A stretch of DNA of 59,955 nucleotides from Basidiobolus meristosporus CBS 931.73 (Eukaryota; Fungi; Basidiobolomycota). The stretch spans positions 1 to 59,955 of the forward strand of contig MCFE01000546.1 in NCBI GenBank assembly GCA_002104905.1, given 5' to 3'. The notes beneath the pieces are model-generated. The model did no database searches. It was not told the DNA's origin and saw only the letters and a program-made list of their open reading frames with translations. This document shows positions 22,506 through 59,955 of this stretch, one piece after another. Each line of letters begins with the position of its first letter. Within the stretch, counting starts at the first letter, position 1. The translations under genes were made by a program, and so were the position numbers.

Positions 22506-22890
22506 GGTGTGAAGGGTAATATACCTCTAGCAAACAAATTTATTCATATGACTATTGTGAGGCATGTACTCATTTTTTTCCTGTGAGTATTATCCCAGTT
22601 TCCTTTCCCCAAATCTAGAGTATTACTCCCATATAACTTTTACCCTGTTTAGTTATCAGCAGTAGCTAACCCATATGTTATTTAGCTTTGTGATCACTTG
22701 TATATATGTGCATTAGGCTAGCACCCATATCAGTATTCCCAACACATGACCCAGGTCAGTGTTACCCTCCCTATCACTTCAATACAATATATTATCTTGG
22801 TGTTACAGAAGTTTCAAACTACCAAACCCTGACTTGTTCAATATGCTGTATTTTTTGAACCTTCCAGGACTTTGTTAGAGTATTCTTAGT
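22506..22890 (+). repeat. Old, diverged 5' half of a family-C-like LTR
   Basis: TGTGAAGGGTAATATACCTC..CATGACCCAGGTCAGTGTTACC..GAACCTTCCAGGAC parallels the C LTR. Confidence 0.65.
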
Positions 22891-23898: not shown

Positions 23899-23902
23899 CT
23901 TG

Positions 23903-24270
23903 TGTTATGATCTGCCGCTTGAATGTTTAAGTTAGATCAGTTCTTAGTCAAAGCAATTAGTATATGTTTAGGTTATCAGTATATCAGTATTATCTATGAA
24001 ATCAGTAGCATTAGTCAGCAAATGAATCAGCAGATCCTTATCAGACAGAGATAGATATATTAAGTAGGATCTTATTGGGTGATGATGATGCCATCAAATG
24101 AGCCATCAGCCACAACCTACATTAGGAAATACAATTAGTCAGCAATTGATCTGGCAAAATGTATATAAGGAGCTGCTGGAACCTCAATAAAAATCAGTTC
24201 AAGTTTTAGTGAATACAATACTAGCTAAACTCCCTATTCCTCTACAACTCTTATACCAAGACTTGTAACA
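23903..24270 (+). repeat. 5' LTR of family G
   Basis: TGTTATGATCTG...GACTTGTAACA. Confidence 0.95.
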
Positions 24271-24271
24271 T

Positions 24272-24280
24272 TGGTAGCAG
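24272..24280 (+). promoter_or_regulatory. PBS of family G (tRNA-iMet 3' end)
   Basis: TGGTAGCAG one base after the LTR. Confidence 0.8.
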
Positions 24281-24328
24281 TGATAACCAGAAACCTCCCT
24301 CCTGAAGAAAGAAGAAACCACCCTCAAG

Positions 24329-25162
24329 ATGTCAGACAATCAAGAATGGAAGAATGCCATGCAGCAAATCCTGGCCCAACAGCAACAGCTACTCCAGATC
24401 CTCAGCCAACAGCAGCAAGGAATAACTACCATGGCTCAGAGCCAGCAAAGCCCTGTCAAGAGCAACTTTAGTGTGAAGGTCAACCGGTACCATGGCAGAG
24501 TCAATGAAAACCTGGGAACTTGGCTCTTTCAGATTGAAGAAGCTTTTAAAGCTCAAGGAATTGCTCCAGAAAGCAAGTTGCATTATGCAGCTTCTTACCT
24601 GGCAGATGCAGCTTTACAGTGGTACCACAACAAGATCAGGTCAGCTACTATGATGGGATGCTCTACAATCTCTACCTGGGATGAGTTTGTGTTGGAAATT
24701 CAGGATGCTTTTGAACCTCCACACCAGCAGACACTACTAAGAAGGAAGTTAAAGACACTCAGACAGAAAGGAATGGTGCAAGAATACATCTATGAGTACA
24801 GATGTCTACTTGGACAAATTGAAAGAATGAACCCCTTGGATCAAGTTGAATACTTTATTGATGGGTTGAAAGAAAGAACTCGCAAGGAAGTCAATTACCA
24901 AAGACCTCAGACTATTGAAGAAGCCATCAAGATTGCCATTGACTATGACTCAGCTATGTTTGGAGTTGGGAAGCTTACAGTGACTAATCAGAAAGGCTAT
25001 AATCATTATGAAAGAAGACAATCAGAAGCAGTACCAATGGAAATTGATGCTATGCAGAAGAATCCCTCCTCAGAAGAATGCAAGAAGAGAGGACTTTGCT
25101 TCAATTGCCACCAGCAGGGACATATTGCAAAGTACTGCCCTCAGAGAAGAAATGGACACTAG
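24329..25162 (+). CDS. gag: Gypsy Gag (277 aa; TAG is premature, from CAG)
   Basis: Retrotrans_gag-like core (LADAALQWY, LRQKGMVQEY), PMEID motif, CCHC knuckle CFNCHQQGHIAKYC. The paralog near 49148 has CAG and reads on into the protease. Confidence 0.93.
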   Translation: MSDNQEWKNAMQQILAQQQQLLQILSQQQQGITTMAQSQQSPVKSNFSVKVNRYHGRVNENLGTWLFQIEEAFKAQGIAPESKLHYAASYLADAALQWYHNKIRSATMMGCSTISTWDEFVLEIQDAFEPPHQQTLLRRKLKTLRQKGMVQEYIYEYRCLLGQIERMNPLDQVEYFIDGLKERTRKEVNYQRPQTIEEAIKIAIDYDSAMFGVGKLTVTNQKGYNHYERRQSEAVPMEIDAMQKNPSSEECKKRGLCFNCHQQGHIAKYCPQRRNGH

Positions 25163-25299
25163 CCAACAAGAACCTTCAACCATATTGAGTCCCATGAACA
25201 CAGTAATGTGGAAGATGAGCTTGAAGAAAACTTGGAACTCACCTTCCATATGACAGAAGAGTACTTGTGCCAAATGACTTCAAACTCAGGGAAGTTATT

Positions 25300-26034
25300 A
25301 GACTTGTTCCGTTGGATAGTGCCACATTGAGCCATGAGTGCCAAATGATGCCATAGTGTGCCAGAGAGGCCAAGTGAGCCTCTACCTGGCCACAGAGTGT
25401 GAAACATAGCTCTGCATCTTCATGCAAAGCAGCCCCTGTGTTTCACTCATTGTGTTGGAGAAAATCCATTTTTTGACCTTTTTTTTTTGGATCAATGTTG
25501 TGCAGGATGTGTTAGAGCAAAAGCAGATTGAAGATATGCATCTGGTACTCAATACCGATGGCACTCTGAATCTAGCTCCTGTAGCTTGTATCATGTCACA
25601 AAAATGAATGGCACTATCTTGGTCCACTGGTTCTATCTGGCACTATATTTAAATATTAGCCCTAAAGTAAGATCTATACAAAGCACTTATAGTGCCAGAT
25701 AGTACCAGTGGACCAAGATAGTGCCATTCATTTTTGTGACATGATACAAGCTACAGGAGCTGGATTCAGAGTGCCATGGGTATTGTGTACCAGATGCATA
25801 TCTTCTGTTCTCCTGTGCTCTTTCACATCCTGAGCTACATTGGTCCACAAAAAAAGGTCAAAAAATGGATTTTCTCCTGCGCAATGGGTGAAACACAGGG
25901 GCTGCTTTACATGAAGATGCAGAGCTATGTTTCACACTCTGTGGCCAAGTATAGGCTCACTTGACCTCTCTGGCACACTATGGCATCATTTGGCACTCAT
26001 GGCTCAATGTGGCACTATCCAACGGAACAAGTCT
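25300..26034. mobile_element. Foldback/hairpin non-autonomous element (F) of the P family
   Basis: Inverted arms 25300-25647 and 25688-26034 around a 40-bp spacer. Termini AGACTTGTTCCGTTG match the P TIR. Flanked by ATT/AAT. Confidence 0.93.
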
Positions 26035-26035
26035 A

Positions 26036-29000
26036 ATGTACTTGAATGGAGTAATCAATGGAGTACCTGCCAAGATCATGATTGACTCAGGAGCATCGCA
26101 TGAGTACATGTTGGAGCAATTTGCTTTGAAAGCTGGAATCAACTTGGAACCTACCAAATCAACTTCAGTTTCCACAGCTGATGGGAACTCCCACATAATC
26201 AACTGTAATACCCAGCCAGTAAGAATGAAGATCAATGACTATGAAGAAGACCTACAGGCTTATATATTTGGGAACTGCAAGTTTGACCTTGTACTTGGAA
26301 AAACCTGGCTATTTTGTTGTAATCCATCAATCAACTGGAGAACCCATGCTACTCAGATCCAAAAAGACAACAAGACCTATGAACTATTACCTGCCATGCT
26401 GGATTTCAACTTGGTCAATTCCAGTGTGTGTGAGACAAGTGAACTTAGCAAGACCCAGTTCTGTAGAGCACTTAGAAAAGGTACCGAGATGTTCCTCATG
26501 GCGGTATTACAGGAGGATTCCTCTACCCCAGCACCCCAGCAGGTCCAGACTCTCTTGAAGAAATATTCAGATGTGTTCCCAGATGAGCTTGTAAGCCTAC
26601 CACCAGTCAGAGACATGGATCATGCCATTGACACAGGAGATAGCCCTCCAGTGAGCAAGACACCTTACAGAATGAGTCCATTGGAATTGGAGGAAATGAA
26701 GAGACAAATTGATCAGCTATTGGAGCAAGGATACATCAGGCCTAGCAAGTCACCCCGGGGAGCACCAGTGCTTTTTGTGAAAAAGAAGGATGGAACACTT
26801 GGGATGTGCATTGACTACAGAGCCCTGAACTCAGTTACCGTCAAGAATAAGTACCCCATACCTTGGATTGATGAGCTTTTAGACCAACTTAATGGAGCCA
26901 CTATTTTCAGCAAGATTGACCTCATGTCAGGATACAACCAGATTAGGGTGAAGACAGAAGACATCCCCAAGACAGCATTCAGGACCAGATATGGACATTA
27001 CGAGTACTTAGTCATGAGTTTTGGCCTCACCAATGCCCCTGCAACATTCATGACGCTGATGCAGACTGTCTTTCAGGAGTACTTAGACAAGTTTGTGATA
27101 ATCTACCTGGATGACATATTGATATACAGCAAGACAGAAGAGGATCACATAGTGCACATTGAAAAGGTCTTGAAGAAACTAAGAGAGAACAAGCTATATG
27201 GCAAGCTAGCCAAGTGTGAATTCTTCAAGGAGCACGTTGAATATCTGGGACACATAGTGACTAGCACAGGAGTAACCTTAGACCCCAAGAAGGTGGAAGT
27301 AATCAAGAATTTGAAGCAGCCCCATAGCATATCAGAACTCAGATCCTTCCTTGGAATGGTTTCCTATTATCGGAGATTTGTCAAGTCATTTGCAAGTATT
27401 GCAGCCCCTTTAACTGATATCCTCAAGAAAGACAATACCTACAAGTGGGACATAGCTTGTGAGACTGCCTTCCAGACCCTAAAGAATGAACTTGCTAAGT
27501 TGCCAAGCTTAAGAATACCAGACTTCAGAAAAGAGTTCACTCTGTGCGCAGATGCTTCAGATTATGCAATTGGTGGAGTGCTGAGCCAAGAACACAAGGG
27601 AAAGGACTACCCTTTTGCCTTTGAATCCAAGAAACTGAACTCAGCAGAACAAAACTATCCAGTCCATGAGAAGGAGATGCTTGCTATAATACACTGTTTG
27701 AAGACATGGAGATGCTATATTGAAGGAGTCAAATGCACTGTGAAGACTGATCATGCCTCCCTCAAGTATATATTTACTCAAAAGGTACTCTCTAGAAGAA
27801 TGACAAGATGGAGTGAATACATTCAGCAATTTGACCTGGAGATTGTCTACTGTCCTGGAAAAAACAACACGGTTGCTGATGCCTTATCAAGATTAGATCA
27901 AGTTGCTCAACTCAACTTGGTGCATGAATCAGATTGGCCTAGCCTATTACCAAAGTACTTGGAGGACCAAGCCATTCCTAATGAGGTGGATGAAGATATC
28001 AAGAAGATAATCCGTGATGAAGCCAGCAAATTTGTTGTACAGAATGAAACACTCTACCAAATTGTTGATGGAAGCCCTATTGCCTATTGTCCTTATGTTG
28101 CTCGCCTGGATTTAATACATAAGCTACACAATGGATATGGACATCTTGGGATTGAAGGAACCTATAGCCTTGTAAAAGCCAGAGCATGGTGGCCCAGAAT
28201 GAAACAAGATATTGAGAAGCTAGTGAAAACATGCCCAAACTGCCAAATCAATCAAGGCCAGCCACAAAGAATTGCTGAACTCTTCCCTTTGGAGCCTTTA
28301 AGACCATTTGAGAGATGGGGAATTGACTTTATTGGAAGACTGCCAACTACCAGAAAATGCAACCGTTGGATCATAGTAGCAATTGACCATGCCACTAAAT
28401 GGCCAGTTGCTAAAGCTGTATCAATAGCCAGTGAACAAGAAGTTGCAAGTTTCATTTACCATGAGATCCTGATGAAGTTTGGATGCCCTGTGGAGATCTT
28501 ATCCGATAGAGGTGCAAACTTTATGGCAAAGACATTAGAGGCTTACCTGGAAATGCAGCAGATCAGACACTTGAAAACCTCGGCATATCACCCCAGAACT
28601 AATGGAGTCACTGAGCGGTTTAATGGATTATTTGGAAAAATGCTGACCAAGTATGCAAATGGAGGTGTCAGTAGATGGGATGAGTTCATAGACCAAGCAC
28701 TCTTTGCATGCAGAGTCAGAGTACACAACACCACCCAGCAATCACCATTTTACTTGGTTTATGGATGTGAACCAAGGATTCCAGGAGATCTCACACAACC
28801 AAAACTTACAGACACCTTATAAGATGAACTCAGTCAGCCAAGTAGACACCAGCAACTGGAACAAAGACGTCAAGAGGCACAGACCAAAGTATCTCAAAGC
28901 GCAGAAAAGATGAAGCAGAGATTTGATAAGACTATAGCACCAGAAGCATTGACAGTTGGGAACTTTGTATTGCTAAGAAACAACACTCGGAAGAAGTTTG

Positions 29001-29200
29001 AGCCACAATGGACAGGACCATTCAAGATCATCAGAGAATGTCCATTTGCAACTTACCAACTGGTGGACAAACAAGGTAATATCCGGGAAGACTTAGTGCA
29101 TAGGGACAGACTCAAGCGTGCAAGACTTGCTGATAATACTGAACCATCAAGATATTGGTATCACAAGAAAAGAGATTCAGGAGAACCCTCTCAACTTTAG
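26036..29200 (+). CDS. pol: Gypsy Pol (PR-RT-RNaseH-IN); one premature TAA at 28820-28822 after the integrase core
   Basis: [65 protein letters not shown]. The C-terminal GPF tail (28910-29200) is in the same frame. Confidence 0.95.
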
Positions 29201-29210
29201 TAGGGGAGAA

Positions 29211-29578
29211 TGTTATGATCTGCCGCTTGAATGTTTAAGTTAGATCAGTTTTTAGTCAAAGCAATTAGTATATGTTTAGATTATCAGTATATCAGTATTA
29301 TCTATGAAATCAGTAGCATTAGTCAGCAAATGAATCAGCATATCCTTATCAGACAGAAATAGATATATTAAATAGGATCTTATTGGGTGATGATGATGCA
29401 AGCAAATGAGCCATCAGCCACAACCTACATTAGGAAATACAATTAGTCAGCAATTGATCTGGCAAAATGTATATAAGGAGCTGCTAGAACCTCAATAAAA
29501 ATCAGTTCAAGTTTTAGTGAATACAATACTAGCTAAACTCCCTATTCCTCTACAACTCTTATACCAAGACTTGTAACA
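29211..29578 (+). repeat. 3' LTR of family G
   Basis: Direct repeat of 23903-24270, preceded by the PPT. Confidence 0.95.
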
Positions 29579-30049
29579 CTTGGAGAAGTGCTGCAACCTC
29601 TTGGTGTTCCAATTAATGCTCCAAAACTCCACTGAAGGTATTGTGATAGTCTTTTCAGCTCTTGATGTGGTAGCCTTGTCTGTCAGTGTGAGCTGTTGTG
29701 TTGTGTTATGATTAGTTTGGGGCATATTCTATAATGGTAGAGGCTAATTGACAATATAAATAACTTCCAGTATGCTAATACTAAAATAGCTTATTGGGAG
29801 TTTGATATACCAATAGAAGATGTAACTTTCATTAATATTCTCAATCTTATGCTTAAAATATACTATAGACAGTGATTCTCACTTCTGCAGCAGTGTTCTG
29901 ACCTTCTGTTGACTATTAAGCTTATTTACTTTTGAAGCAACTTTTCTTTGTTTGGAAGTCACTTTCCTTTCTGAGAAAATATATCTAGAATGGAAGTTCT
30001 GTGCTCCCCTTTAACCTTAAGAGGTATGTTGTAGAAGTCTCTCAAGGGG

Positions 30050-35029: not shown

Positions 35030-37217
35030 TTGATGTTTGAGATTTATTATTGTGGTACTAACCCTGTAATTGTTATAAAATGCTCCTGGGTGCTGAGAAG
35101 CCCTCCTTATTCAGTGTTACAGCTGTACTACTTCTACAAAGGTATAAATACTAAGGTACTTTATGAATAAACAACTGTTCAGCTAGCACTACTATTTCCC
35201 AATAAGCTCCTTATATCCAATTGACTTGTTATATTGCAACCGGTTACCAACCCCAAATGCATAGATTTATACTAAAAATGACTTCTACCATCAAACAGAA
35301 CAATACATGTATCTTCCCTGTAAAGGAGAGTTCTGATAGGAAGAACAGCAGACTTTTCAGAATCAAGATGCAATCCACCTTTAGAAAAGAGAGCTTTGCA
35401 ATATACTAGCAGGAAAAGAAGTTGAGCCTAAAGGAACAGCATAAGAAATGGAGGAGATTCAAGAGAAGGAGAGAAAGGTCTTTAATGGCACAAGAATCAA
35501 TGTACAGGGTTCCTTCATTGGAGAATATATGCTTCTAATACTGCTAAAGCAGGATGAGAATCCCTGGAGAGGATCTTTAGAGCAAAGTCAGTATTAAGCA
35601 AGCTTTCTTTAAAACAACAAATATAATGGGGAGAACTTGAGGTTGGGTAAAGAGAAATAAGAAAATGTGGTAAAAACTAGGAAAAGTGGTGTGTCAAAAA
35701 TATGGTAAAAACTATTAAAACCTAACTATCTGAAAACAATCAAAATGTGCGGTATAAGGGGGAGAACTTGAGGGGGTAAATTCCCAATAGCATAGTTAAA
35801 TTCCCAAAAGCATAGGCCAACTTGGCCTCCCTGGCACACTATGGCATTATTTGGTGCTCATTGCTCAATGTGGCACTATCCAGCAGTACAAGTCTAATGC
35901 TTTATTCAGCTTAGAGAGGCACCCAGGAAAGTGAGGTTAGCAACAAAACAAAAAAAAACCTGGTTGCTGTAACTACTGTAAGAAGCCTGAACACTGGGCC
36001 AGCAAATGCAAGAAGAAGCAAGCAGACAAAAAACAGAAACTAGAGCAAGCAGACCAGATAACTACAGATGAACAGTTATTTGTAACTGTACAAGAGAGTG
36101 CAAGCAACTGAAGTAATGAATGGTATATTAACTGGAGCATCAAAGCATATTCCAATATAACAGAGTGGCTCAGAAACTTAAAGACTATCCCTGTAAGAAA
36201 GGTTTATCTGGGAGACAACTCCTCACTGGAAGCAACCATCAGTGGGTCTGTACAGCTAAATATGGGTAATATTTCAGTGGCAATAACAGCAAAACTGACT
36301 GATGCACTACATTTGCCTATAATAGCCAAGAACCTACTCTCAGTCAGTGAGGTAACTACTCTGGGACTGAAACTTGTGTTTACATTGCTGAGTTGCTCCA
36401 CATTAGGTGAAAAAGACAAAAAGTAGCTTTGGGGATCAGAGATCACATCATATACAAGTTATAACTCAAGATCATTGTAACTGAGTAGGTCAACATTGCT
36501 AAAGCGGATGAAACTAACTGGATGACATGGCATAGGAGGCAAGGACTCAATGGGGAACCAAAATGAGACAATTGGTGAAAACAACTTGTTTTGGGCCTGA
36601 ATTACTCAACTTGGATCCAATTGAATGTCTGTAAGGGTTGCTATATGGCAAACAAGCTAGGCAGTGTTTTAGGAGCTCAGAAGGCATCAACACAACTAAA
36701 ATATTGGCTACTGTGCACTTGACATATCTGGGCCCAAGAGTGTCATTAGGAGCCCAGAGATACTTTATGACTTTTATTGGTGACAATACAAGATATGGAT
36801 GGGTGTACTTTTTCAAGACAAAGGGGTAGGCATTGGAGATGTTTAAGAACTTCAAGAATATAGTAGAAACACAAACCAGGTGTAAATCAAGGAATTGTTT
36901 GGTGACAATGGGGGGAAATATTGCTCAAGGAAATTTGCTAAATACAGCTAATCTACTGGCGTACTTCAACAGACTACTGTTCTACACACTACACAGCAAA
37001 ATGGAATACCAGCACATGCAAATAGAGCAGTAGTAGAGATGGGAAGATCTATGCTACATGATAAGGGTGAGGACCACAGGTTAGGGGCTGAATCTGCTTC
37101 TACTGCACTGTACATCAGGAATAGATGCCCAACAACAGCACTACATGTCTCTACACTCTTTGAACATATTCAGGCAAACAGCACCTGCTTATGTGCCAAA
37201 CCTCAGAATCTGGAACA
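35030..37217 (+). pseudogene. Old Copia family-B copy, left part (LTR end, gag, PR, IN remnants); right part at 41401-41965
   Basis: Reads ..LCAKPQNLE|QAIQSP.. across the GAACA TSD of the younger B insertion. Confidence 0.8.
35813..35895. repeat. Isolated terminal fragment of foldback element F
   Basis: CTGGCACACTATGGCAT...GTGGCACTATCC...CAAGTCT followed by AAT; matches 25955-26037. Confidence 0.85.
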
Positions 37218-37520
37218 TGTTGCAATTTAAGAAGTAATTTGGATATAAGGAACTTATCAAGAAATAGTGATAATAGTTGAACTGTTGTTTATTCATAAAG
37301 AAGCTCAGTATTTATACCTTTGTAGAAGTAATACAGCTGCAACACTAAGTAAGGAGGGTTTCTCAATATTCAGGAGCATTCTGTAACAGTTTCAGGGTTA
37401 GTACATAATGTTTGGTAATAGTGCTAATTTGATCCTGACTATAGGGGAATAATCATAAGATCATATATCTGGAGAAAGTGGCAAAGTAAAGCCACTAAAT
37501 GAGTCCTACAGTGACTAAGA

Positions 37521-39449
37521 CTAGCCTAGAATTGTTAAGTAAGTTTTTAGCTGCTGAATGATACCAAATAGTCCAATATTTGAACACTCCCCCTCAACTA
37601 AATAATTTCTTAATCCCAATTTCTCTCTAAGGATCTCAAACTGTGGCCTAGCTAGTGGTTTTGTCAATATGTCTGCCACCATTTTGTCAGTTGGGCAGTA
37701 AACCAGCTCTACTAAGTTATTTTCTACAGCTTCCCTCACAAAGTGATGCTGTATATCAATGTGCTTAGTTCTGGCATGATTAGTAGGATTTCTAGCTAAT
37801 GAAATATAACTTTGATTATCCTTGTAAATACATGTTGGTTCACCTGAATTAAAACCTAAGTCTTTGAATAATCTTTGTAGCCATATAGCCTCCTTAGTTG
37901 CTTGACATGCAGCCATATATTTGGCTTCAGTTGTAGATAGTGCCACAGTTGGTTGTTTCTTGCAATTCCAAGTAATAGCTGCACCAGCATAAAGAAATAC
38001 ATAGCCTGTGGTAGAGTGTCTGTCAATCAGATCTCTACCCCAATCTGAATCACTATAACCATCAAATTTTCGCCTATTAGCTGCTCCAGAGTATTCCAGT
38101 ACCATATTTATGGTACCTTGTAAATATCTGAAAATCCGCTTAACTGCTGCAATTTGATCTGATCCATAATTCTGCATGAATTGACTGACTATTCCAACTG
38201 CTACTGCAATATCTGGACATGTAGACACCATCAAGTACATTAGGCTACCGACCATTGATTGATAGGGAAAGTTTTGGTCCATATTTGAGCCGTTTTCATC
38301 TATAACTGGCTGAGATTTGCTTAATTTCAGGTTATTGTCCATAGGGGTTGCTACAGGTTTGCAATTTTCCATTTTGAAGCGTCTAAGAATGTCCCTGATG
38401 TACTTAGACTGATTCAGCACAATTTTCTGCGTAGGTATGTCAAATTTGACCTCAATTCCAAGAAAATAGCTCAATTTTCCAAGATCTTTCATCTCAAACT
38501 TGCTGAAGAGATCTGATTTCGTCTGTTTAAGTGCCTCTTGATCACTTGTAGCTATAATTAGGTCGTCCACATAAAGAACTAGGATGATCACACCCTTTTT
38601 GAGCTGTTTCACATATATACTGTGATCTGCAGTGCTACGAGAGAACCCAATTTCCTCTAGATATGTGTCAATCTTGTTATACCATGCTCTGGGTGCCTGC
38701 TTAAGCCCATACAATGATTTTCTAAGTTTGCACACCTTATGGGGGCTTTTTGGATCGGTAAAACCTTCTGGTTGCTCCATATATATAGTTTCTTGCAAAT
38801 CCCCATTTAGAAAGGCTGTTTTGACGTCCATTTGGTGTAAATCTAGGCTGTGTACAGCTGCCAGGGCTAGAACTGTCCTAATAGAGTTAAACTTGGCAAC
38901 CAGAGCAAATGTTTCCTTAAAGTCTAGTCCCTGGATCTGGGAATAGCCTTTAGCTACCAATCTAGCCTTGTACTTATCAACGGCACCATTTGTGGTTATC
39001 TTGATCTTGTAGACCCATCTACATCCTATTGGCTTTCTCCCATTTGGTAAATCTACCAGTTCCCACGTTTTTGCCTTGATCAGTGATTGGTACTCCTCCT
39101 GCATGGCTTGTTGCCACTTAGTAGCATCTGGACCTTGCATTGCCTGTTCCAGATTCTGAGGTTTGGCACATAAGGCAAGATAAGCTTCTTCATGATCATT
39201 GGATGTCTGCCACCAGGATCCAGGGGCATTTCTTATTCTGGTAGATCTCCTAACTGGGATAATCTGTTCTGATCTGGAACTGGTAGAAGTATCTTCCATC
39301 TCTGGCTGGATTTGGTACGTATCTTCTTCATTTGTGTTGATTGCATCATCAGGCAGCTGGCCAATGATTTCTGTGGCTTTCTGATCTGAATTCTCCTCAA
39401 ATACAACGTCCCTGCTCTTGATCAGCTTCTGAATCTCGCCATCATACAC
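37521..39449 (-). CDS. pol: Copia RT-RNase H part of pol (after a 1-nt frameshift); runs into the LTR because the TGA became TCA
   Basis: KYKARLVAKGY, QMDVKTAFLNG, LYGLKQAPRAW, LYVDDL, YSDSDW, RTKHIDI, VADILTKPL. Confidence 0.95.
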   Translation of the reverse strand: MYDGEIQKLIKSRDVVFEENSDQKATEIIGQLPDDAINTNEEDTYQIQPEMEDTSTSSRSEQIIPVRRSTRIRNAPGSWWQTSNDHEEAYLALCAKPQNLEQAMQGPDATKWQQAMQEEYQSLIKAKTWELVDLPNGRKPIGCRWVYKIKITTNGAVDKYKARLVAKGYSQIQGLDFKETFALVAKFNSIRTVLALAAVHSLDLHQMDVKTAFLNGDLQETIYMEQPEGFTDPKSPHKVCKLRKSLYGLKQAPRAWYNKIDTYLEEIGFSRSTADHSIYVKQLKKGVIILVLYVDDLIIATSDQEALKQTKSDLFSKFEMKDLGKLSYFLGIEVKFDIPTQKIVLNQSKYIRDILRRFKMENCKPVATPMDNNLKLSKSQPVIDENGSNMDQNFPYQSMVGSLMYLMVSTCPDIAVAVGIVSQFMQNYGSDQIAAVKRIFRYLQGTINMVLEYSGAANRRKFDGYSDSDWGRDLIDRHSTTGYVFLYAGAAITWNCKKQPTVALSTTEAKYMAACQATKEAIWLQRLFKDLGFNSGEPTCIYKDNQSYISLARNPTNHARTKHIDIQHHFVREAVENNLVELVYCPTDKMVADILTKPLARPQFEILREKLGLRNYLVEGECSNIGLFGIIQQLKTYLTILG

Positions 39450-39880
39450 TCTATACCCTTTAGTATCTTCACAATACCCAAGAAGATCCCTTTTCTACTC
39501 TTTGGTTCCAACTTTGAGCGTTTTTTGTCAGGGATGTGATAAAAAACATCACTGCCAAAGATCCTGAGGTGCTGGAGATCTGGTTTTTTGCCTGTATATG
39601 CTTCAAAGGGTGTAGAATCACGTAGTGCTGTTGTTGGGCATCTGTTCTTGATGTATACAGCGGTAGCAACAGATTCAGCCCAAAACTTGTAGTCCACTCC
39701 CTTATCATGTAGCATAGATCTTCCCATCTCTACTATTGTTCTATTTGCACGTTCTGGTACTCCATTTTGCTGTGGAGTATGAGGAACTGTGGTCTGTTGA
39801 AGTATACCAGTAGACAAGCAGTATTTTGCAAACTCCTTTGAGCAGTATTCTCCTCCATTGTCACTTCGTAGTACCTTCAA
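39422..39880 (-). CDS. pol: Copia integrase core fragment
   Basis: LRSDNGGEY, PQQNGVPERANRT; in frame with the upstream ORF across a TAA at 39881. Confidence 0.92.
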   Translation of the reverse strand: MKVLRSDNGGEYCSKEFAKYCLSTGILQQTTVPHTPQQNGVPERANRTIVEMGRSMLHDKGVDYKFWAESVATAVYIKNRCPTTALRDSTPFEAYTGKKPDLQHLRIFGSDVFYHIPDKKRSKLEPKSRKGIFLGIVKILKGIECMMARFRS

Positions 39881-40990
39881 TTAACACCCAGTTTGTGTTT
39901 CTGCCATGTTCTTGAAGTGCTTAAACGTCTCTAAAGCTTCATCCTTTGTTTTGAGGAAGTACACCCATGTATATCTTGTCTTGTCATCAATAAACGTCAT
40001 AAAGTATCTCTTGGCTCCAAAGGACAGTGTTCTCATGGGGCCACATATGTCTGAGTGTACAATAGCCAATATTTCGGTGGTATTGATGCCTTCTGAGCTC
40101 TTAAAACGTTGCCTAGCTTGTTTGCCATATGAACATCCCTTACAAACATTCAGTTTGATCAGAATTGAGTATTTTAGGCCCAAAACAAGCTGATTTTTCA
40201 CCAATTGGCTCATTTCCTGTTCCCCAATGTGTCCTAGCCTCTTTTTGTCTGCTTGTTTCTTCTTGCATTCTCTTGCCCAGTGTCCTGGCTTCTTACAGTA
40301 GTTACAGCAGCCAGGTTTTCTTTGGTTTTGTTGCTTTCCCTTCTTTTCTGTGTGCCTTTCTGAACTGAATAAAGCATTATCTTCAATTTTCTCTGCTTGG
40401 TCATTACATCTGAGTTCTTCATGGAGAAGTCTTCCTTTGACATAGTCTAAAGTCAAGTTATCTTCTCTGCTTTCAAAAGAAAGTATGAGTGGCTCATACT
40501 CGTCTGGTAGGCTGCAAAGCAGACAGAGTATCTTTTCTTCATCATCTACACCAGCATTAATACTGTAAAGTTCTTCTGCAAGTGTCTCCATTCTGGTAAT
40601 GAGTTGTAGCATGTCATCATCTGGCTTTTTTCTCATGTTGAAGAACTTTTGTTTCAAATAAAGCTTGCTTGATACTGACTTTGCTCTAAAGATCTTCTCC
40701 AAGGATTCCCATGCTGCTTTGGCAGTATTTGAGGCATGGATTTGTCCAATGAAGAAGTCTTGCACATTGATGCATATTGCATTGAAGGCCTTTCTCTCCT
40801 TCTCCTGAAACTTCTCCAAATCTTCTGCTGTTCCTTTGGGCTCAATTTCCTTTCCTGTTACTATGTTCCAAAGCTTTCTTTCCTCAAGGTGGATCTGCAT
40901 CTTGATTCTCCAAAGTCTGTAGTTCTTCCCATCAAACCTTTCCTTTACAGGGAAGATGTTGGTATTGCTTTGTTTGCTGGTAGAAGTCAT
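39881..40990 (-). CDS. gag: Copia Gag fused in frame to the integrase N-terminus (protease region deleted)
   Basis: FDGKNYRLW, CCHC CNYCKKPGHWAREC, then directly RLGHIG..CKGC..VHSDICGP. Confidence 0.93.
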   Translation of the reverse strand: MTSTSKQSNTNIFPVKERFDGKNYRLWRIKMQIHLEERKLWNIVTGKEIEPKGTAEDLEKFQEKERKAFNAICINVQDFFIGQIHASNTAKAAWESLEKIFRAKSVSSKLYLKQKFFNMRKKPDDDMLQLITRMETLAEELYSINAGVDDEEKILCLLCSLPDEYEPLILSFESREDNLTLDYVKGRLLHEELRCNDQAEKIEDNALFSSERHTEKKGKQQNQRKPGCCNYCKKPGHWARECKKKQADKKRLGHIGEQEMSQLVKNQLVLGLKYSILIKLNVCKGCSYGKQARQRFKSSEGINTTEILAIVHSDICGPMRTLSFGAKRYFMTFIDDKTRYTWVYFLKTKDEALETFKHFKNMAETQTGC

Positions 40991-41967
40991 CTTTAGAATA
41001 GATTAAGGCAATCGGGGCTCATAACCTGTTGCAATTTAAGAAGTAATTTGGATATAAGGAACTTATCAAGAAATAGTGATAATAGTTGAACTGTTGTTTA
41101 TTCATAAAGAAGCTCAGTATTTATACCTTTGTAGAAGTAATACAGCTGCAACACTAAGTAGGGAGGGTTTCTCAATATTCAGGAGCATTCTGTAACAGTT
41201 TCAGGGTTAGTACATAATGTTTGGTAATAGTGCTAATTTGATCCTGACTATAGGGGAATAATCATAAGATCATATATCTGGAGAAAGTGGCAAAGTAAAG
41301 CCAGTAAATGAGTCCTACAGTGACTAAGACTAGCCTAGAATTGTTAAGTAAATTTTTAGCTGCTGAATGATACCAAATAGTCCAATATTTCAACAGAACA
41401 GGCAATACAGAGTCCACATGCTGCTCTGTTGCAACAAGCCATGCTGGTGGGGTGCTTATCACTGATCAGGGTAAAATGTGGGAACTGGTATATTTACCCA
41501 ATGGGAGTAAGCCAATAGTATGTTGATGGGCCCACAAGATCAAGATAACCACAAATGGTCCTGTTGATTGGTAAAAGGCTAGATTTGTGGCCAAAGACTA
41601 TTCCCAAATTCAGGTACTAGAGTTTAAGGAAACAATTGCTCTGGTTGCCAAGTTTAACTCCATTAGGACAGTCTAGCCCTGGCAGCTGTACACAGTCTAG
41701 ATCAACACCAAATGGATATTAAAAGTGCCATTCTATATGGGAATCTGCAAGTCACTATATTCATGGAGCTACCAGAAGGTTTTACCAAGCCAAAAGGCCC
41801 CCATAAGGTGTGCAGACTTAGAAATTGTTGTATGAGCTTAGGCATGCTCGAACAGCAAGGTATTACAAGATTGATGCGTATATAGGGGAGATTGGGCTCA
41901 TTTGACGTACTGCAAGCTTCAGAATATCTGTGAAACAGCTTAAAATGGATGTGATCATCTTAGCTCT

Positions 41968-52610: not shown

Positions 52611-53135
52611 ATGGGGATCTGCCAGAAACTATATATATGGAGCAAACATAAGGTCTTACCAACCTAAAAGGCTCGTACATGGTGTGAAGACTTAAAAATC
52701 TGTTGTATGGGCTTAAGCAGGAACCTGCAGCATAGTATAACAAGATTTACACATGTCTACAAAAGATTAGGCTCCTTCAAAGCACTGCAAATAGCAGTTT
52801 ATGTGTGAAATAGATTAAAGATGGAATGATTATGCTGGTACTTTATGGGGACAGCCAAACAATTGCCACAAGTCACAGGGAGCCACTTCAACAGACAAAA
52901 TTAGATCTTTTCCGCACATTGATCTCAGAAATTTGAGCTTTTGTTTGAGTTAAGGTTAGATTTAACATGCCCACACAGAGAGCTGTACTACATCAGCTTG
53001 AGTATATCAGTAAAATCTTAGATGCTTCAAAATGGAGAATTGCCAGCCTGCACCAACCCCTATAGACAATAATTCAAGGATGAGCAAATATCAGCCAATT
53101 TTGGGAGAAAACAGCTCAAATGTGGACCATGATTT
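52610..53135 (+). pseudogene. Decayed Copia RT fragment
   Basis: LKNLLYGLKQ, MLVLYGDS and NCQPAPTP remnants. Confidence 0.7.
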
Positions 53136-53540
53136 TGTTGAAATATTGGACTATTTGGTAGCATTCAGCAGCTAAAAATTTACTTAACAATTCTAGACTA
53201 GTCTTAGTCACTGTAGGACTCATTTACTGCCTTAACTTTGCCACTTTCTCCAGATATATGATCTTATGATTATTTCCCTATAGTCAGGATCAAATTAGCA
53301 CTATTACCAAACAATAAGTACTAACCCTGAAACTGTTACAGAATGCTCCTGAATATTGTGAAACCCTCCCTACTTGGTGTTACAGCTGTATTACTTCTAC
53401 AAAGGTATAAATACTGAGCTTCTTTATGAATAAACAACAGTTCAACTGTTATCACTATTTCTTGATAAGTTTCTTATATCCAAATCACTTCTTAAATTGC
53501 AACAGGTGATGAGCTCCGATTGCCTTAATCTATTCTAAAG

Positions 53541-54716
53541 ATGACTTCTACCAGCAAACAAAGCAATACCAACATCTTCCCTGTAAAGGAGAGGTTTGAT
53601 GGGAAGAACTACAGACTTTGGAGTATCAGGATGCAGATCCACCTTGAGGAAAGAAAGCTTTGGAACATAGTCACAAGAAAGGAATTTGAGCCCAAAGGAA
53701 CAGCAGAAGATGTGGAGATGTTTCAAGAGAAGAAGAGAAAGGCCTTCAATGCCATATGCATCAATGTGCAAGACTCCTTCATTGGACAAATCCATGCCTC
53801 AAATACTGCCAAAGCAGCATGGGAATCCTTAGAGAAGATCTTTAGCGCAAAGTCAGTATCAAGCAAGCTTTATTTGAAATGGAAGCTCTTCAACATGGGG
53901 AAGAAGCCAGATGATGACATGCTACAACTCATTACCAGAATGGAGACACTTGCAGAAGAACTTTACAGTATTAATGCTGGTGTAGATGATGAAGAAAAGA
54001 TACTCTGTCTGCTTTGCAGCCTACTAGATGAGTATGAGCCACTCATACTTTCTTTTGAAAGCAGAGAAGACAACTTGACTTTAGACCATGCCAAAGGAAG
54101 ACTTCTCCATGAAGAACTCAGATGTAATGATCAAGCAGAGAAAATTGAAGATAATGCTTTATTCAGTTCAGAAAGGCACACAGAAAAGAAGGGAAAGCAA
54201 CAAAACCAAAGAAAACCTGGCTGCTGTAACTACTGTAAAAAGCCAGGACACTGGGCAAGAGAATGCAAGAAGAAACAAGCAGACAAAAAACAGAAACTAG
54301 TGCAGGCAAACCATATAACTACTGATGAACAGTTATTTGTAATTGTACAAGAGAGTGCAAGTAACCAAAGTAATGAATGGTATATTGACTCTGGAGCATC
54401 ACAGCATATTTGTGGTATAAAGGATTGGTTCAGCAACTTAAGGACTATTCATGTAAGAAAGGTTTATCTGGGAGATTACTCTGCATTGGAAGTTACCGCC
54501 AGTGGGTCTATACAACTAAATATGAGTGATAACTCAGGGGCAACAACAGCAAAACTGACTGATGTACTCTATGTACCTGGAATAGCTAAGAACCTACTCT
54601 CAGTCAGTAAAGCAACTACTCAGGGACTGAAATTTGTTTTTACTAAGCTGTGCTGCTCAATATTGAGTGAAAATGGACCAAAATTAGCTTTGGGAATTAG
54701 AGATCACAATATATAG
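53541..54716 (+). CDS. gag: Copia Gag-protease (premature TAG)
   Basis: CCHC knuckle, WYIDSGASQH, VLYVPGIAKNLLSVS. Confidence 0.92.
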   Translation: MTSTSKQSNTNIFPVKERFDGKNYRLWSIRMQIHLEERKLWNIVTRKEFEPKGTAEDVEMFQEKKRKAFNAICINVQDSFIGQIHASNTAKAAWESLEKIFSAKSVSSKLYLKWKLFNMGKKPDDDMLQLITRMETLAEELYSINAGVDDEEKILCLLCSLLDEYEPLILSFESREDNLTLDHAKGRLLHEELRCNDQAEKIEDNALFSSERHTEKKGKQQNQRKPGCCNYCKKPGHWARECKKKQADKKQKLVQANHITTDEQLFVIVQESASNQSNEWYIDSGASQHICGIKDWFSNLRTIHVRKVYLGDYSALEVTASGSIQLNMSDNSGATTAKLTDVLYVPGIAKNLLSVSKATTQGLKFVFTKLCCSILSENGPKLALGIRDHNI

Positions 54717-55104
54717 AAGTTACAATGCAAGATCATTGTACCTGAGTATGTCAACATTGCTGAAACTGATGAAACCAACTGGGAGACATGGCATAGGAGG
54801 CTAGGACACATTGGGGAACAGGAAATGAGCCAATTGGTGAAAAATCAGCTTGTTTTGGGCCTAAAATACTCAATTCTGATCAAACTGAATGTTTGTAAGG
54901 GATGTTCATATGGCAAACAAGCTAGGCAATGTTTCAAGAGCTCAGAAGGCATCAATACCACTGAAATATTGGCTATTGTACACTCAGACATATGTGGCCC
55001 CATGAGAACACTGTCCTTTGGAGCAAAGAGATACTTTATGATGTTTATTGATGACAAGACAAGATATACATGGGTGTACTTCCTCAAAACAAAGGATGAA
55101 GCGT

Positions 55105-55908
55105 TGTGGTGGTGTAGAGGTACTCCTGGGAGATGCTACACAACTCAAGGTTTGTGAGGTGTCTGATGGGTGCAATAACCTCTGTGTCTAAACTGCTGGT
55201 GTCTTTGTCAATATGTCACTATGGTAAAAGCTCCTGCTTCTCTAGCTTCCTAGGTGCTCCAAGTGTCTCCAAAGGCCTCTGTGTGTCTTGTGCACTACCT
55301 TGAAAAGCTCCTTGATGGCAGGTCTGAGATGTACTGTGGAAGGCAGGTGCAGTGATCAACTGCTAATCAATAAGGTAGAAGTGTTACTGATAGAAGGGAT
55401 GATTTATTGATGAGGGATTGCTTTCCCTTAAATACTTTTCCTGATTGCCAAGTGATTACTAATGACAAGGTTCTAGAAGATTCTAGGTATCAGTGGAATT
55501 CTTGATGACATCACTATGAGCTAAAAATATGCCAAGAATGTCCTGGAAGGTTCTAAAAGGCACAGCACTCTCAACCAATCAGGAATCAGTAGTCTGAAAC
55601 CTGTGCAACATAGAAGTACCATATATGGTATTGAAATGGTAGAGATGGTAACACAGACCTAGGTCATGTGTCACGGGTACTGACGCGGGTACTTGCCTTA
55701 TATAGATACATCTACTGATCACAAAGCTGAATAACATCTGGGATAACTAATGCTAATAACTAATCAGGGTAAACATCATATGAGGATAATACTGATAATA
55801 TGGGCAAAAGAAGAATGGGATAATACTGATAAGATAAAATATGGATAAGTATATCATAATGACTATATGAATAAACTTGTCTGTGGGAGGTATGTTTACC
55901 CTACCACA
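55105..55908 (-). repeat. 3' LTR of family C
   Basis: Adjacent to the reverse-complement PPT TCCACCCCCCAC. Confidence 0.95.
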
Positions 55909-55986
55909 TCCACCCCCCACTTGAGCTAAAAAGTTCCCTGAAACTTTTTAGCTAACCACTGTAAGTTTGGAGAACAAAGTGCTCTC

Positions 55987-57843
55987 TCAGTCTTCCTCAA
56001 TGAAGCCACCTGTCCTTTCTTGAGATAGAAATCTACATGATGTCATTGATCGGATATTGTTTGAGTCCACACCACAGAAGGTGGCTGTTAGTCCTGGGCT
56101 CTCTGAGTATATAGTATACCATGCTGAACCATCTGGGTAGTTCACTGCAGTTGCTCTTGCTTTTACTTCCCATGGTCTTCCAAGAAGTAATTCAAAGTTA
56201 GCCTTTGCACAAATGAATACTGGGATCTCATGGGGTATTCCTTCAATGATGAGAGGGAAGCTGTGAATAATTCCTAAAAGCTTTGATTGCCCTGAGTTGG
56301 CATCCTTCATGCTCCAATTGATATTGGTGTCTATGGGCAATAGGTCTTTGCATGGTAGTTGTTTCCAAGCCTCCAAAGGCATCACACATATCTCAGATCC
56401 ACTGTCTATATGACATAGGATTTCTTGATTATGCACAGTTCCTGTAGCTGTTGCAGTTGCCACTGAGTAGTAGTGTTTCTGGCTTTGATGCAGCTTACTG
56501 ATATCTTGGCTTCCTTGAGCTGTCCTGACCTGGTTGCCTTGAGTTGCTTCAATTGGATGCTTTCTTATTCTGATATGCTCATCCAGAGTCTTTCTTACAG
56601 ATGGTGATACACTGAGTAGCTCTCCAACCTTGATTGATATGTTGCTTCCTAGTATATGACTGGTCAGAGCCTCTGGGGTACCATTTTGCTTGACTCTAGG
56701 CTGCATGTGGTAGTTGTTGGCCTTGGCAGACTCTTGTAAAATTAATAGGGGTGATGCTTTCTTCTCAATCACAACTTCTGGCTCACATCTTGGTACTTTT
56801 GTTGCTGGGCCTGGATTAGCCATTTTTTCAGGATGGTGTCTCTTTGAAGCATAAATTGAAGCTATATGATCTTGGGCCTCTCTGGGGTCCTCATAGTCAA
56901 AGTTCAGAACTTCAGCTGGATTGAAGTAGTCAGGATCTTCTTCTTCATGGAGGTGAACCTTTCTTGTTTGAGAGGTGACTTGCTTGTAGTGAACTCTCAT
57001 TCCTCCTTGTCCAAATGCTGTGGATAATTTGTCACCATGCTTACTGACTATGTATCCCTGAGGACTATATAGGACATCACCTGTGGATAGTAATGACTGA
57101 AGCTCTTGGCAATTTCTCTTGGAATGGTTGGCAGAGTCACACCACATGCATGTATATTTGACTTCTTTCTCTACTGGCTTCTGACCATATGCTTTGCTGG
57201 CAAGTAGCAAAGAGAGTTTCTCTAGTTGCTGTGTCAGCTCCTGAATTTGAGTGCTTTGATTGCTGGGATCAAGTATGTCTTGGCTATCTTGGTTTTGTTC
57301 TGGGCTTGAAAGAAGCTTTCTGATTGGTGAGGTTTCTTCAGGGGCAAGTAGAATCTGCTTAGCTAACTGAAATGCAGGCAGTGAACTCATAGCTTTCACA
57401 GTAGGATTGTTTTCAATCCTTCTCACCAGGCCTTCTGGTAGTGCTCTGAGCAGATAGGCAGATAAAGTCAGATCAGTGATAATGCCTTGGGCTTTCAGTG
57501 ACTCTCCAATTTGCTCAAGGCCACTCAAGTATTCTTTCAATGGTAGCTGCTTAAACTTGCTATAAGCAAAGTTCTCCAAGTCTTGAAGTGTGTAGTCAAC
57601 TTGTCTCTCTCCATATTCATCAATCAAGTAGCTCTTCAAGAGGGTCCAATTTGTCAGCAGATCATTTCTTTCATATAATGAGAGCATAATCTCATCAGTG
57701 CTGTAGGGGGGCATCTCTTCAGCCATAATGGCCTCAGGTATTTTGTGGGCTCTGCAGAAAAGCTCCCACCTCTTGATGAAAGCTTTAACTTTGGTTCCAT
57801 CAAAGAAAGGAGTTCCTTGCATTCCTGGTAAAGGTAGATCCAT
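55987..57843 (-). CDS. gag: Intact Gag-aspartic protease polyprotein (618 aa), no RT/RH/IN
   Basis: N-terminal PFFDG..V..F..RWE gag motif, CCHC-like CMWCDSANHSKRNC, DUF4100-like ISIKVGELLSVSPSVRKTL, protease CHIDSGSEICVM..LLLGRPW. Confidence 0.9.
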   Translation of the reverse strand: MDLPLPGMQGTPFFDGTKVKAFIKRWELFCRAHKIPEAIMAEEMPPYSTDEIMLSLYERNDLLTNWTLLKSYLIDEYGERQVDYTLQDLENFAYSKFKQLPLKEYLSGLEQIGESLKAQGIITDLTLSAYLLRALPEGLVRRIENNPTVKAMSSLPAFQLAKQILLAPEETSPIRKLLSSPEQNQDSQDILDPSNQSTQIQELTQQLEKLSLLLASKAYGQKPVEKEVKYTCMWCDSANHSKRNCQELQSLLSTGDVLYSPQGYIVSKHGDKLSTAFGQGGMRVHYKQVTSQTRKVHLHEEEDPDYFNPAEVLNFDYEDPREAQDHIASIYASKRHHPEKMANPGPATKVPRCEPEVVIEKKASPLLILQESAKANNYHMQPRVKQNGTPEALTSHILGSNISIKVGELLSVSPSVRKTLDEHIRIRKHPIEATQGNQVRTAQGSQDISKLHQSQKHYYSVATATATGTVHNQEILCHIDSGSEICVMPLEAWKQLPCKDLLPIDTNINWSMKDANSGQSKLLGIIHSFPLIIEGIPHEIPVFICAKANFELLLGRPWEVKARATAVNYPDGSAWYTIYSESPGLTATFCGVDSNNIRSMTSCRFLSQERTGGFIEED

Positions 57844-57895
57844 GGTCTTGATAATTTGTTCTTTCTTAAGTCTTCTAGGGGCAGTTCAGTCAAAC

Positions 57896-57913
57896 CCCCC
57901 ACGTTGGGTGCCA
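57896..57913 (-). promoter_or_regulatory. PBS of family C (tRNA-Lys-like)
   Basis: TGGCACCCAACGTGGGGG resembles the canonical Lys1,2 PBS TGGCGCCCAACGTGGGGC; 4-nt spacer after the LTR. Confidence 0.8.
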
Positions 57914-57917
57914 AATA

Positions 57918-58721
57918 TGTGGTGGTGTAGAGGTACTCCTGGGAGAAGCTACACAACTCAAGGTGTGTGAGGTGTCTGATGGGTGCAATAACCTCTGTGT
58001 CTAAACTGCTGGTGTCTTTGTCAATATGTCACTATGGTAAAAGCTCCTGCTTCTCTAGCTTCCTAGGTGCTCCAAGTGTCTCCAAAGGCCTCTGTGTGTC
58101 TTGTGCACTACCTTGAAAAGCTCCTTGATGGCAGGTCTGAGATGTACTGTGGAAGGCAGGTGCAGTGATCAACTGCTAATCAATAAGGTAGAAGTGTTAC
58201 TGATAGAAGGGATGATTTATTGATGAGGGATTGCTTTCCCTTAAATACTTTTCCTGATTGCCAAGTGATTACTAATGACAAGGTTCTAGAAGATTCTAGG
58301 TATCAGTGGAATTCTTGATGACATCACTATGAGCTAAAAATATGCCAAGAATGTCCTGGAAGGTTCTAAAAGGCACAGCACTCTCAACCAATCAGGAATC
58401 AGTAGTCTGAAACCTGTGCAACATAGAAGTACCATATATGGTATTGAAATGGTAGAGATGGTAACACAGACCTAGGTCATGTGTCTCGGGTACTGACGCG
58501 GGTACTTGCCTTATATAGATACATCTACTGATCACAAAGCTGAATAACATCTGGGATAACTAATGCTAATAACTAATCAGGGTAAACATCATATGAGGAT
58601 AATACTGATAATATGGGCAAAAGAAGAATGGGATAATACTGATAAGATAAAATATGGATAAGTATATCATAATGACTATATGAATAAACTTGTCTGTGGG
58701 AGGTATGTTTACCCTACCACA
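57918..58721 (-). repeat. 5' LTR of family C
   Basis: Direct repeat of 55105-55908. Confidence 0.95.
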
Positions 58722-58841
58722 GCGTTGGAGACATTTAAGCACTTCAAGAACATGGCAGAAACACAAACTGGGTGTAAATTGAAGGTACTTTGAAGTGACA
58801 ATTGAGCAGAATACTGCTCAAAGGAGTTTGCAAAATACTGC

Positions 58842-59729
58842 TTGACTACTGGTATACTTCAACAGACCACAGTTCCTCATACTCCACAGCAAAATGGAGT
58901 AACAGAACGTTCAAATAGAGCAATAGTAGAGATGGGAAGATCTATGCTACATGATAAGGGAATGGACTACAAGTTTTGGGCTGAATCTGTTGCTACCGCT
59001 GTATACATCAAGAACAGATGCCCAACAACAGCACTATGTGATTCTAAGCCCTTTGAAGCATATACAGGCAAAAAACCAGATCTCCAGCATCTCAAGATCT
59101 TTGGCAGTGATGTTTTTTATCACATCCCTGACAAAAAATGCTCAAAGTTGGAACCAAAGAGTAGGAAAGGGATCTTTCTTGTGTATTGTGAAGATACTAA
59201 AGGGTATAGAGTGTATGATGGCAAAATTCAGAAGCTGATCAAGAGCAGGTACATTGTATTTGAGGAGAATTCAGATCAGAAATCCACAGAAACCATTGGT
59301 CAGCTGCCTGATGATGCAATCAACACTAATGAAGAAGATACATACCAAATCCAGCCAGATATGGAAGATACTTCTACCAGTTCCAGATCAGTACAGATTA
59401 TCCCAGTTAGGAGATCTACCAGAATAAGAAATGCCCCTGGATCCTGGTGGCAGACATCCAATGATCATGAAGAAGCTTATCTTGCCTTATGTGCTGAACC
59501 TCAGAATCTGGAACAGGCAATGCAAAGTCCAGATGCTACTAAGTGGCAACAAGCCATGCAGGGGGAGTACCAATCACTGATCAAGGCAAAAACGTGGGAA
59601 CTGGTAGATATACCAAATGGGAGAAAGCCAATAGGATGTAGATGGGTCTATAAGACCAAGATAACCTCAAATGGTGCCGTTGATAAGTACAAGGCTAGAT
59701 TGGTAGCTAAAGGCTATTCCCTGATCTAG
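58842..59729 (+). pseudogene. pol: Copia family-B integrase core and RT start (stops on both sides)
   Basis: PQQNGVTERSNR, KYKARLVAKGY; near-identical to the reverse complement of 38930-39820. Confidence 0.92.
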
Positions 59730-59955
59730 GGACTAGACTTTAAGGAAACATTTGCGTTGGTTGCCAAGTTTAACTCTATTAGGACAGTTCTAGCCCTGGC
59801 AGCTGTACACAGTCTAGATTTACACCAAATGGACATCAAAACAGCCTTTTTAAATGGGGATTTGCAAGAAACTATATATATGGAGCAACCAGAGGGTTTT
59901 ACCAATCCAAAAGGCCCCCATAAGGTGTGCAAACTTAGAAAATTGTTGTATGGGC

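Follow-up and report, generated by a model that had tools for sequence, protein, structure and literature searches.

The stretch of Basidiobolus meristosporus CBS 931.73 DNA analysed here (contig MCFE01000546.1, 59,955 bp, hereafter the window) carries a 3,617-bp long terminal repeat (LTR) retrotransposon, at positions 55105-58721 of the minus strand, whose only gene encodes Gag and protease. We interpret it as a pol-less element of the Gypsy type, young and non-autonomous, which probably depends on reverse transcriptase (RT) and integrase (IN) supplied in trans; since pol is absent, it is unable to move on enzymes of its own. The combined Gag-protease product is referred to below as Gag-PR, and its gene as gag-pro.

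Anatomy and insertion site

In the sense of the element, the 5' LTR occupies positions 57918-58721 and the 3' LTR positions 55105-55908, both on the minus strand, both 804 bp long and both with TG..CA ends, the termini being TGTGGT..ACCACA. The two copies differ by three mismatches over their 804 bp (99.6% identity), all of them transversions, at plus-strand LTR positions 30, 48 and 569. Two putative transcription signals can be read from the sense strand of the 5' LTR, a TATA-like TATTTAAG at 58240-58247 as a promoter signal and AATAAA at 58216-58221 as a poly(A) signal, about 25 nt apart. A plus-strand orientation, for which TATATA and AATAAA occurrences on that strand were considered, was ruled out: the primer-binding site (PBS), the polypurine tract (PPT) and the open reading frame (ORF) fit the minus strand only.

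The element is flanked by a 4-bp target-site duplication (TSD), GCGT, with its left copy at 55101-55104 and its right copy at 58722-58725, and the insertion point falls within the integrase reading frame of a Copia-type retrotransposon. A paralogous copy of this Copia element, inverted and about 96% identical (37214-41398), is uninterrupted at the corresponding position near 39936, where it reads GATGAA-GCTT-TAGAGAC. This copy represents the empty site, and we therefore regard the insertion and its 4-bp duplication as real.

The PBS, TGGCACCCAACGTGGGGG, is located at 57896-57913 on the minus strand, 4 nt inside of the 5' LTR. It agrees at 16 of 18 bases with the published tRNA-Lys1,2 primer-binding site TGGCGCCCAACGTGGGGC (PMC1084362), the comparison being made with that sequence. 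This Lys-type PBS occurs only once in the window, and ARAGORN detects no tRNA there. At the opposite end of the internal region, the PPT AAGTGGGGGGTGGA (55909-55922, minus strand) directly adjoins the 3' LTR. One base upstream of it lies a perfect hairpin with a 13-bp stem and a 4-nt loop (55924-55953, minus strand); the 81-nt 3' untranslated stretch has a folding energy of -24.5 kcal/mol with a z-score of -1.9, and no Rfam family is found in the window.

Direct LTRs with TG..CA termini, a TSD, a PBS and a PPT together make up the structure of an LTR retrotransposon. The first-pass annotation of this DNA, prepared from the letters alone, had listed LTRs of about 99.6% identity, a Lys-type PBS, a PPT and a 4-bp TSD, and all of these are borne out by the sequence and by the paralogous empty site. 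It had also reported the absence of RT, RNase H and IN, and this too proved correct. The internal region comprises only 2,009 bp, of which the ORF takes 1,857, leaving no space for these three enzymes, and no pol domain in it is recognised by Pfam.

The gag-pro reading frame

The intact gag-pro ORF runs from 57843 down to 55987 on the minus strand and encodes 618 amino acids, confirming the single uninterrupted frame described at first pass. Its ATG, in the context ACCATGG, follows the 5' LTR after 75 nt, and its stop codon precedes the PPT by 64 nt. An AlphaFold2 model of the whole product, built on 60 sequences, has a mean predicted local distance difference test (pLDDT) score of 77, and one built separately for residues 1-300 scores 86. 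All coordinates of the domains given below refer to the minus strand.

According to the models, the protein begins with a helical, capsid-like domain at residues 1-166 (57346-57843), where pLDDT is mostly above 85. It continues with a CCHC zinc knuckle and a small domain at residues 230-300, the knuckle itself, CMWCDSANHSKRNC, being read from the sequence at residues 232-245 (57109-57150), and then passes into a disordered linker. The C-terminal half contains a DUF4100-like helical segment, modelled at residues 390-425 and delimited by the Pfam match at residues 371-428 (56560-56733), and a beta domain at residues 455-600 (56044-56481), identified by Foldseek and by the alignments of relatives as a retropepsin with a conserved post-protease tail. 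The DSGS protease site occupies residues 480-483 (56395-56406), and an LLGRPW motif follows at residues 553-558.

The beta domain matches the RVP (retroviral-protease-like) domain of DDI1 in Foldseek with an E-value of 5e-8 and superimposes on HIV-1 protease with a template-modelling (TM) score of 0.78, the fold to be expected of a dimeric aspartic protease. For the N-terminal part, the comparison of profiles by hhalign pairs residues 18-143 with the stretch annotated as Ty3_capsid in the Gag encoded by a Gypsy element in the same window (probability 76%, E 2.4e-5), and the best Foldseek matches of the N-terminal model in the PDB are the capsids of dArc1, PNMA2, Arc and Copia, albeit weak ones (E 0.015 to 1.3). 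Together, the profile comparison and the fold matches lend moderate support to capsid homology. Pfam recognises no Gag family in the ORF, an NCBIfam search yields nothing, and a sequence search of the PDB gives nothing meaningful. The DUF4100 match scores 23.4 bits against a Pfam cut-off of 27.9, and the same weak match is present in the relatives P0005 and P0025. Among the domains initially proposed for this ORF, then, the CCHC knuckle and the DSGS protease site stand, while DUF4100 stays below threshold and the gag motif corresponds to no Pfam Gag family.

Every position that is invariant or near-invariant in the clade is kept in the focal protein. These positions include C232, C235, H240 and C245 of the knuckle, which are invariant or nearly so in the alignments of relatives, as well as D480, G482 and G555, which are invariant in alignment A2 and invariant or nearly so in A4. 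The active-site consensus of the clade is D-x-G-S-E, and DSGS-E is hence its normal motif. The protein features of Ty3/Gypsy elements are a capsid fold, a CCHC knuckle and a D-S/T-G retropepsin, and all three are present, the capsid fold with moderately supported homology.

Relatives and the boundary between gag-pro and pol

An exhaustive HMMER search with the ORF protein against 1.84 billion representatives recovered 688 relatives at E<=1e-3. The closest are 24-31% identical and none exceeds about 31% over the whole protein, which indicates that the focal family itself is absent from the representative library; a homologous-protein search with the full ORF likewise gave no match in the range of 340-1081 amino acids. 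The named top matches belong to Smittium, Furculomyces and Dispira, fungi of the Kickxellomycotina, and the others are metagenome or Logan proteins. The long relatives P0005, P0011, P0017 and P0025 continue after the protease into RVT_1, RT_RNaseH_2, Integrase_H2C2 and rve domains, and the clade is for this reason considered Ty3/Gypsy-like. The assignment of the focal element to Ty3/Gypsy (Metaviridae-like) is accordingly an indirect and putative one, made through the full-length relatives of its Gag-PR.

Is the 618-residue frame a complete gene or the stump of a longer one? Most relatives stop just a few residues past the point that corresponds to the focal C-terminus. Of the 145 relatives with an alignment reaching the protease end, 88 have their last residue within the equivalent of residues 590-650, and the distribution peaks sharply at 613-620. 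When the focal protein was compared with a profile of 19 relatives from which it had been left out, its residues 3-611 aligned to nodes 70-769 of 773, taking in the conserved block after the protease. Judged by these alignments, the ORF is the whole native gag-pro ORF of the clade, colinear with it from end to end and not a truncated stump; what is missing is pol.

The relatives also show how pol is normally attached. A closer sub-alignment (A3) was used to fetch 80 soil-metagenome loci. In one metagenome subfamily the frame of pol is shifted by -1 against that of gag-pro, with which it shares 19-67 nt, and a canonical slippery heptamer, T TTA AAA or G GGA AAA, is found 5-9 nt before the gag-pro stop; in a second subfamily, gag-pro and pol are fused in a single frame. 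The arrangement in the first subfamily makes gag-pro a natural translational unit in the clade. The conserved heptamer has the appearance of a site for programmed -1 frameshifting in a Gypsy clade of fungal type. The combination of -1-frame pol and heptamer is seen at loci L003, L005, L006, L008, L011, L012, L019, L023, L024 and L026. Within the overlaps the heptamer also codes for a conserved C-terminal D-P-L-K motif.

Some of the relatives have themselves lost pol. Compared with L048, at least five copies that are 75-92% identical (L049, L064, L069, L076 and L080, on Ga0307514 / Ga0307511 contigs) share a deletion that starts at reference positions 2318-2322, just after the protease, and keep only a short pol fragment (reference positions 4458-4693). 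In L069 an LTR-like pair brackets an element of about 4.6 kb. Two further relatives, L016 and L052, are deletion derivatives with other junctions, from which it follows that one-off deletions also happen. Loci L015 and L079 were not counted as pol-less relatives: their homology fades soon after gag-pro, and no LTR is visible.

Origin of the pol-less state

How could an element devoid of pol have reached its present site? Under the interpretation of a trans-dependent Gag-PR element, the 5' LTR would drive transcription of an RNA that is translated into Gag-PR, a protein able to assemble particles and cut itself, and that is then packaged. Reverse transcription would be primed by tRNA-Lys and carried out by RT supplied in trans from an autonomous relative outside the window. 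Integration into the Copia integrase region, with its 4-bp duplication, would likewise rely on IN supplied in trans, and the loss of pol would have preceded the insertion.

The LTR divergence of 0.37% places this insertion at about 0.1 to 2 million years ago, depending on the mutation rate assumed. An earlier insertion of the same LTR family is recorded by a solo LTR at 18780-19583 (plus strand), again 804 bp long and 95.8% identical, with GCGC on one side and GCAC on the other, which the first-pass annotation had correctly attributed to the family. The 'older LTR' that it placed at 22506 could not be upheld as a member. This distantly related fragment (22506-22889, plus strand) is 73% identical over the first 380 bp or so of the LTR, the remainder does not align, and the identity is under the usual 80% family threshold.

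Whether the element belongs to a propagating Gag-PR lineage is a question on which we stand close to evenly divided, leaning slightly to the negative. Such a lineage is favoured by the copies of one metagenome family of relatives that have a common break just after the protease. It is also favoured by the tidy boundaries of the focal element, a complete ORF1 followed by a short stretch to the PPT, which two random deletion breakpoints would rarely leave behind; this is rough reasoning and not a computed test. A more elaborate proposal would have selection streamline such a lineage, in a non-plant eukaryote, to the native gag-pro ORF and the cis signals. Its members would be semi-autonomous and self-propagating, would make and mature their own particles, would take only RT and IN from a partner, and may even compete with that partner or dampen it. 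We put this forward tentatively, as somewhat less likely to be true than false.

A number of observations weigh against the interpretation of the element as a trans-dependent Gag-PR retrotransposon, and against a propagating lineage in particular. The window contains one copy with an internal region and no second copy of the ORF, nor does it contain a pol-bearing partner with the same LTR ends or PBS. With the focal protein as query, no related loci were found in JGI metagenomes or IMG/VR, and the protein libraries hold no members of the focal family at 50% identity or more. The intactness of the ORF is uninformative on selection: about 3.5 substitutions are expected in it since insertion, 5.4% of possible substitutions create a stop, and the probability of finding no stop under neutrality is therefore about 0.83 at this LTR divergence. 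No X XXY YYZ slippery heptamer is present where the ORF ends, and in the -1 frame no more than 4 codons are open ahead of the stop; the +1 frame has an open stretch of 38 codons spanning the stop, a length within chance expectation. The aligned profile does not reach the last seven or so codons with the stop, which could stem from a deletion junction. Capsid homology, moderately supported as it is, comes without a Pfam match and with Foldseek E-values of 0.015 or worse. Finally, a full-length element could have inserted and its pol been deleted afterwards, a scenario to which we return below.

The presence of a single internal region in 60 kb is equally what one would see if the element were a one-off defective copy, its pol lost by template switching in a single round of reverse transcription, its cDNA integrated by the proteins of the parent, the copy itself never moving again and leaving no descendants. 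The young LTRs, the TSD and the intact cis signals are as much expected under this account as under ours, the intact ORF carries no information, and the assorted junctions of L016 and L052 illustrate that deletion derivatives of this kind arise among the relatives. What it has to accommodate is an unusually tidy pair of breakpoints, with gag-pro complete to within about seven residues of the profile end and only 64 nt left before the PPT, and the demonstration by a related family that amplification is open to derivatives whose break lies just after the protease. On balance we consider it unlikely, if by no means far-fetched.

LTR elements commonly suffer internal deletions once they have inserted, and nothing in the window contradicts the idea that a full-length autonomous element inserted here and lost pol later by illegitimate recombination or replication slippage. 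The youth of the element, with three differences per 804 bp of LTR, leaves little time for such an event, however. Sparing both the whole of ORF1 and the PPT would moreover require the breakpoints to fall in two windows of about 60 nt, against some 5.8 kb, for which we arrive at a probability near 1e-4, a rough estimate and not a computed test. Deletion in place thus seems improbable.

The first-pass annotation had raised the possibility of a capsid-based restriction factor. In principle, the particle assembly of a partner could be poisoned by a protein consisting of Gag alone or of Gag-PR, as the examples of Fv1 and Ty1 p22 suggest, and the focal ORF is intact with all clade-conserved residues kept. 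Co-option of Gag-PR in this role (like Fv1, enJS56A1 or Ty1 p22) or in another function kept by host selection is nonetheless very improbable. Near-identical LTRs, a TSD, a PBS, a PPT and a site inside another transposable element are the signature of a recent insertion and not of a fixed host gene, the time has been too short for selection to show, there is no orthologue, and nothing in our results supports a restricting role. Lowest of all we rank an assembly artefact, in which the collapse of repeats joined gag-pro directly to the 3' end of an element: the window is indeed a dense nest of repeats, but the TSDs are clean and matched, the ORF ends at its native position, and there is no repeat at the putative junction, the internal region matching only itself within the window.

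The genomic neighbourhood

The Copia element that received the insertion is split by it into a left part at 53133-55104 (plus strand; gag, protease and the start of integrase) and a right part at 58722-59955 (plus strand; integrase, an SH3-like domain and the start of RT), which runs off the window. In its paralogue at 37214-41398, to which the copy at 53133-59955 is inverted, the ORF is broken into three (369, 152 and 642 amino acids). A Gypsy element at 23903-29590 retains a pol ORF of 953 amino acids, which shows the initial impression that nearly every other transposable-element ORF in the window is broken to be overstated; by tblastn, this Gypsy element is unrelated to the focal one. Searches with the Copia RT and the Gypsy pol of the window gave best matches of only about 50% identity, spread over plants, Closterium, rotifers, Mucorales and metagenomes.

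A second young LTR element, at 33-3352, has 350-bp LTRs (33-382 and 3003-3352) that are 100% identical, with TG..CA ends and a 5-bp TSD, CAAAG, and contains no ORF above 150 amino acids. Its PBS-like sequence GGTTATGAGCCCCGAGC, at 2986-3002 on the minus strand, recurs with 2-3 mismatches beside the Copia LTRs at 41010 and 42336. This resemblance suggests that the element may be a non-coding derivative mobilised by the in-window Copia family. The existence of such a young non-autonomous element makes trans-mobilisation plausible, and apparently active, in this genome. Its plausibility gains further from the solo LTR at 18780-19583, the mark of an earlier insertion by the focal LTR family.

Elsewhere in the window, an intact ORF of 294 amino acids at 4367-5251 (minus strand) encodes a DDE_Tnp_4 (PIF/Harbinger-type) transposase domain (E 2.5e-20), and downstream of it three consecutive ORFs occupy 5611-6885 on the opposite strand. 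A repeat of about 650 bp is present in two copies that are 84% identical (17652-18302 and 23250-23902), near both LTR relics discussed above; the second of them reaches exactly to the start of the Gypsy element's 5' LTR (23903).

Comparison with known systems

Elements that keep Gag and protease and borrow RT and IN are intermediate retrotransposons, neither autonomous nor wholly parasitic. They are relevant to the strength of the cis action of Gag on its own RNA and to the evolution of helper-parasite pairs. The focal element can be set against several groups of genes and elements that share parts of this character.

Fv1, Ty1 p22, PEG10 and RTL1 provide Gag or Gag with protease in the absence of RT and IN, and are host genes or internal translation products without a functional LTR, PBS or PPT. 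Genes of the Fv1 and PEG10 type and the focal element are thus alike in coding capacity, but domesticated genes have lost their cis signals, whereas the LTRs, TSD, PBS and PPT of the focal element are intact and young. Large retrotransposon derivatives (LARD) and terminal-repeat retrotransposons in miniature (TRIM) are, like the focal element as we propose it, non-autonomous LTR elements mobilised in trans. They have no coding capacity, in contrast to its intact 618-codon ORF, and it is the neighbouring element at 33-3352 that represents the non-coding kind. The two-ORF Ty3/Gypsy loci of soil metagenomes (L003, L005, L011, L012, L013 and L023) encode the same succession of Gag, CCHC knuckle and protease, and their ORF1 end is aligned alike; they carry a -1-frame pol behind a slippery heptamer, of which the focal element has neither, and the identity between the proteins is about 20-24%.

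The closest parallels in gene content come from plants. A deletion derivative of ATHILA that retains only gag and protease has reached high copy number in Arabidopsis (A. thaliana and A. lyrata), where its autonomous partner is known (PMC11735389); many copies and a known partner there contrast with a single copy, in a different clade, here. The wheat Fatima subfamilies RLC_famc1.4 and RLC_famc1.5 have ORFs for only gag and protease and have been proposed to complement a subfamily that supplies RT and IN (PMC6097303). Fatima belongs to the Copia superfamily and numbers thousands of copies with subgenome-specific proliferation, while the focal element is assigned to the Gypsy type and is represented in the window by one copy. 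In sugar beet, 28 GAG/PROT-only families have been described and discussed alongside the TR-GAG elements of Coffea, Arabidopsis and Triticeae, short non-autonomous LTR elements, termed 'semi-autonomous', which have a PBS, a PPT and a structural gene and no replication enzymes (PMC13570524). The focal element resembles TR-GAG in being short and non-autonomous, in its PBS and PPT and in the retention of a structural gene. In the strict sense TR-GAG elements have a GAG ORF only, whereas the focal element also encodes a complete retropepsin and so falls outside that class. The TR-GAG and sugar beet cases described so far are all from plants. Its content of Gag, CCHC knuckle and protease alone, as determined by Pfam and by structure, is that of the GAG/PROT-only families.

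The focal element is therefore a well-formed single example of a documented kind, although one copy cannot show a successful lineage. The first-pass annotation was right that such elements are known mainly from plants, but it made them out to be more unusual than they are, GAG/PROT-only families being documented in several plants. Should many copies with this junction exist in the genome, a new clade would be added to those showing the phenomenon, and the focal element would be a very compact, apparently intact test object of 3.6 kb. While the documented Gag-protease-only cases are mostly from plants, the element described here, in a host that is possibly also new for such elements, belongs to a Gypsy group that has been little described and has its relatives in fungi and soil metagenomes, a clade new for elements of this kind.

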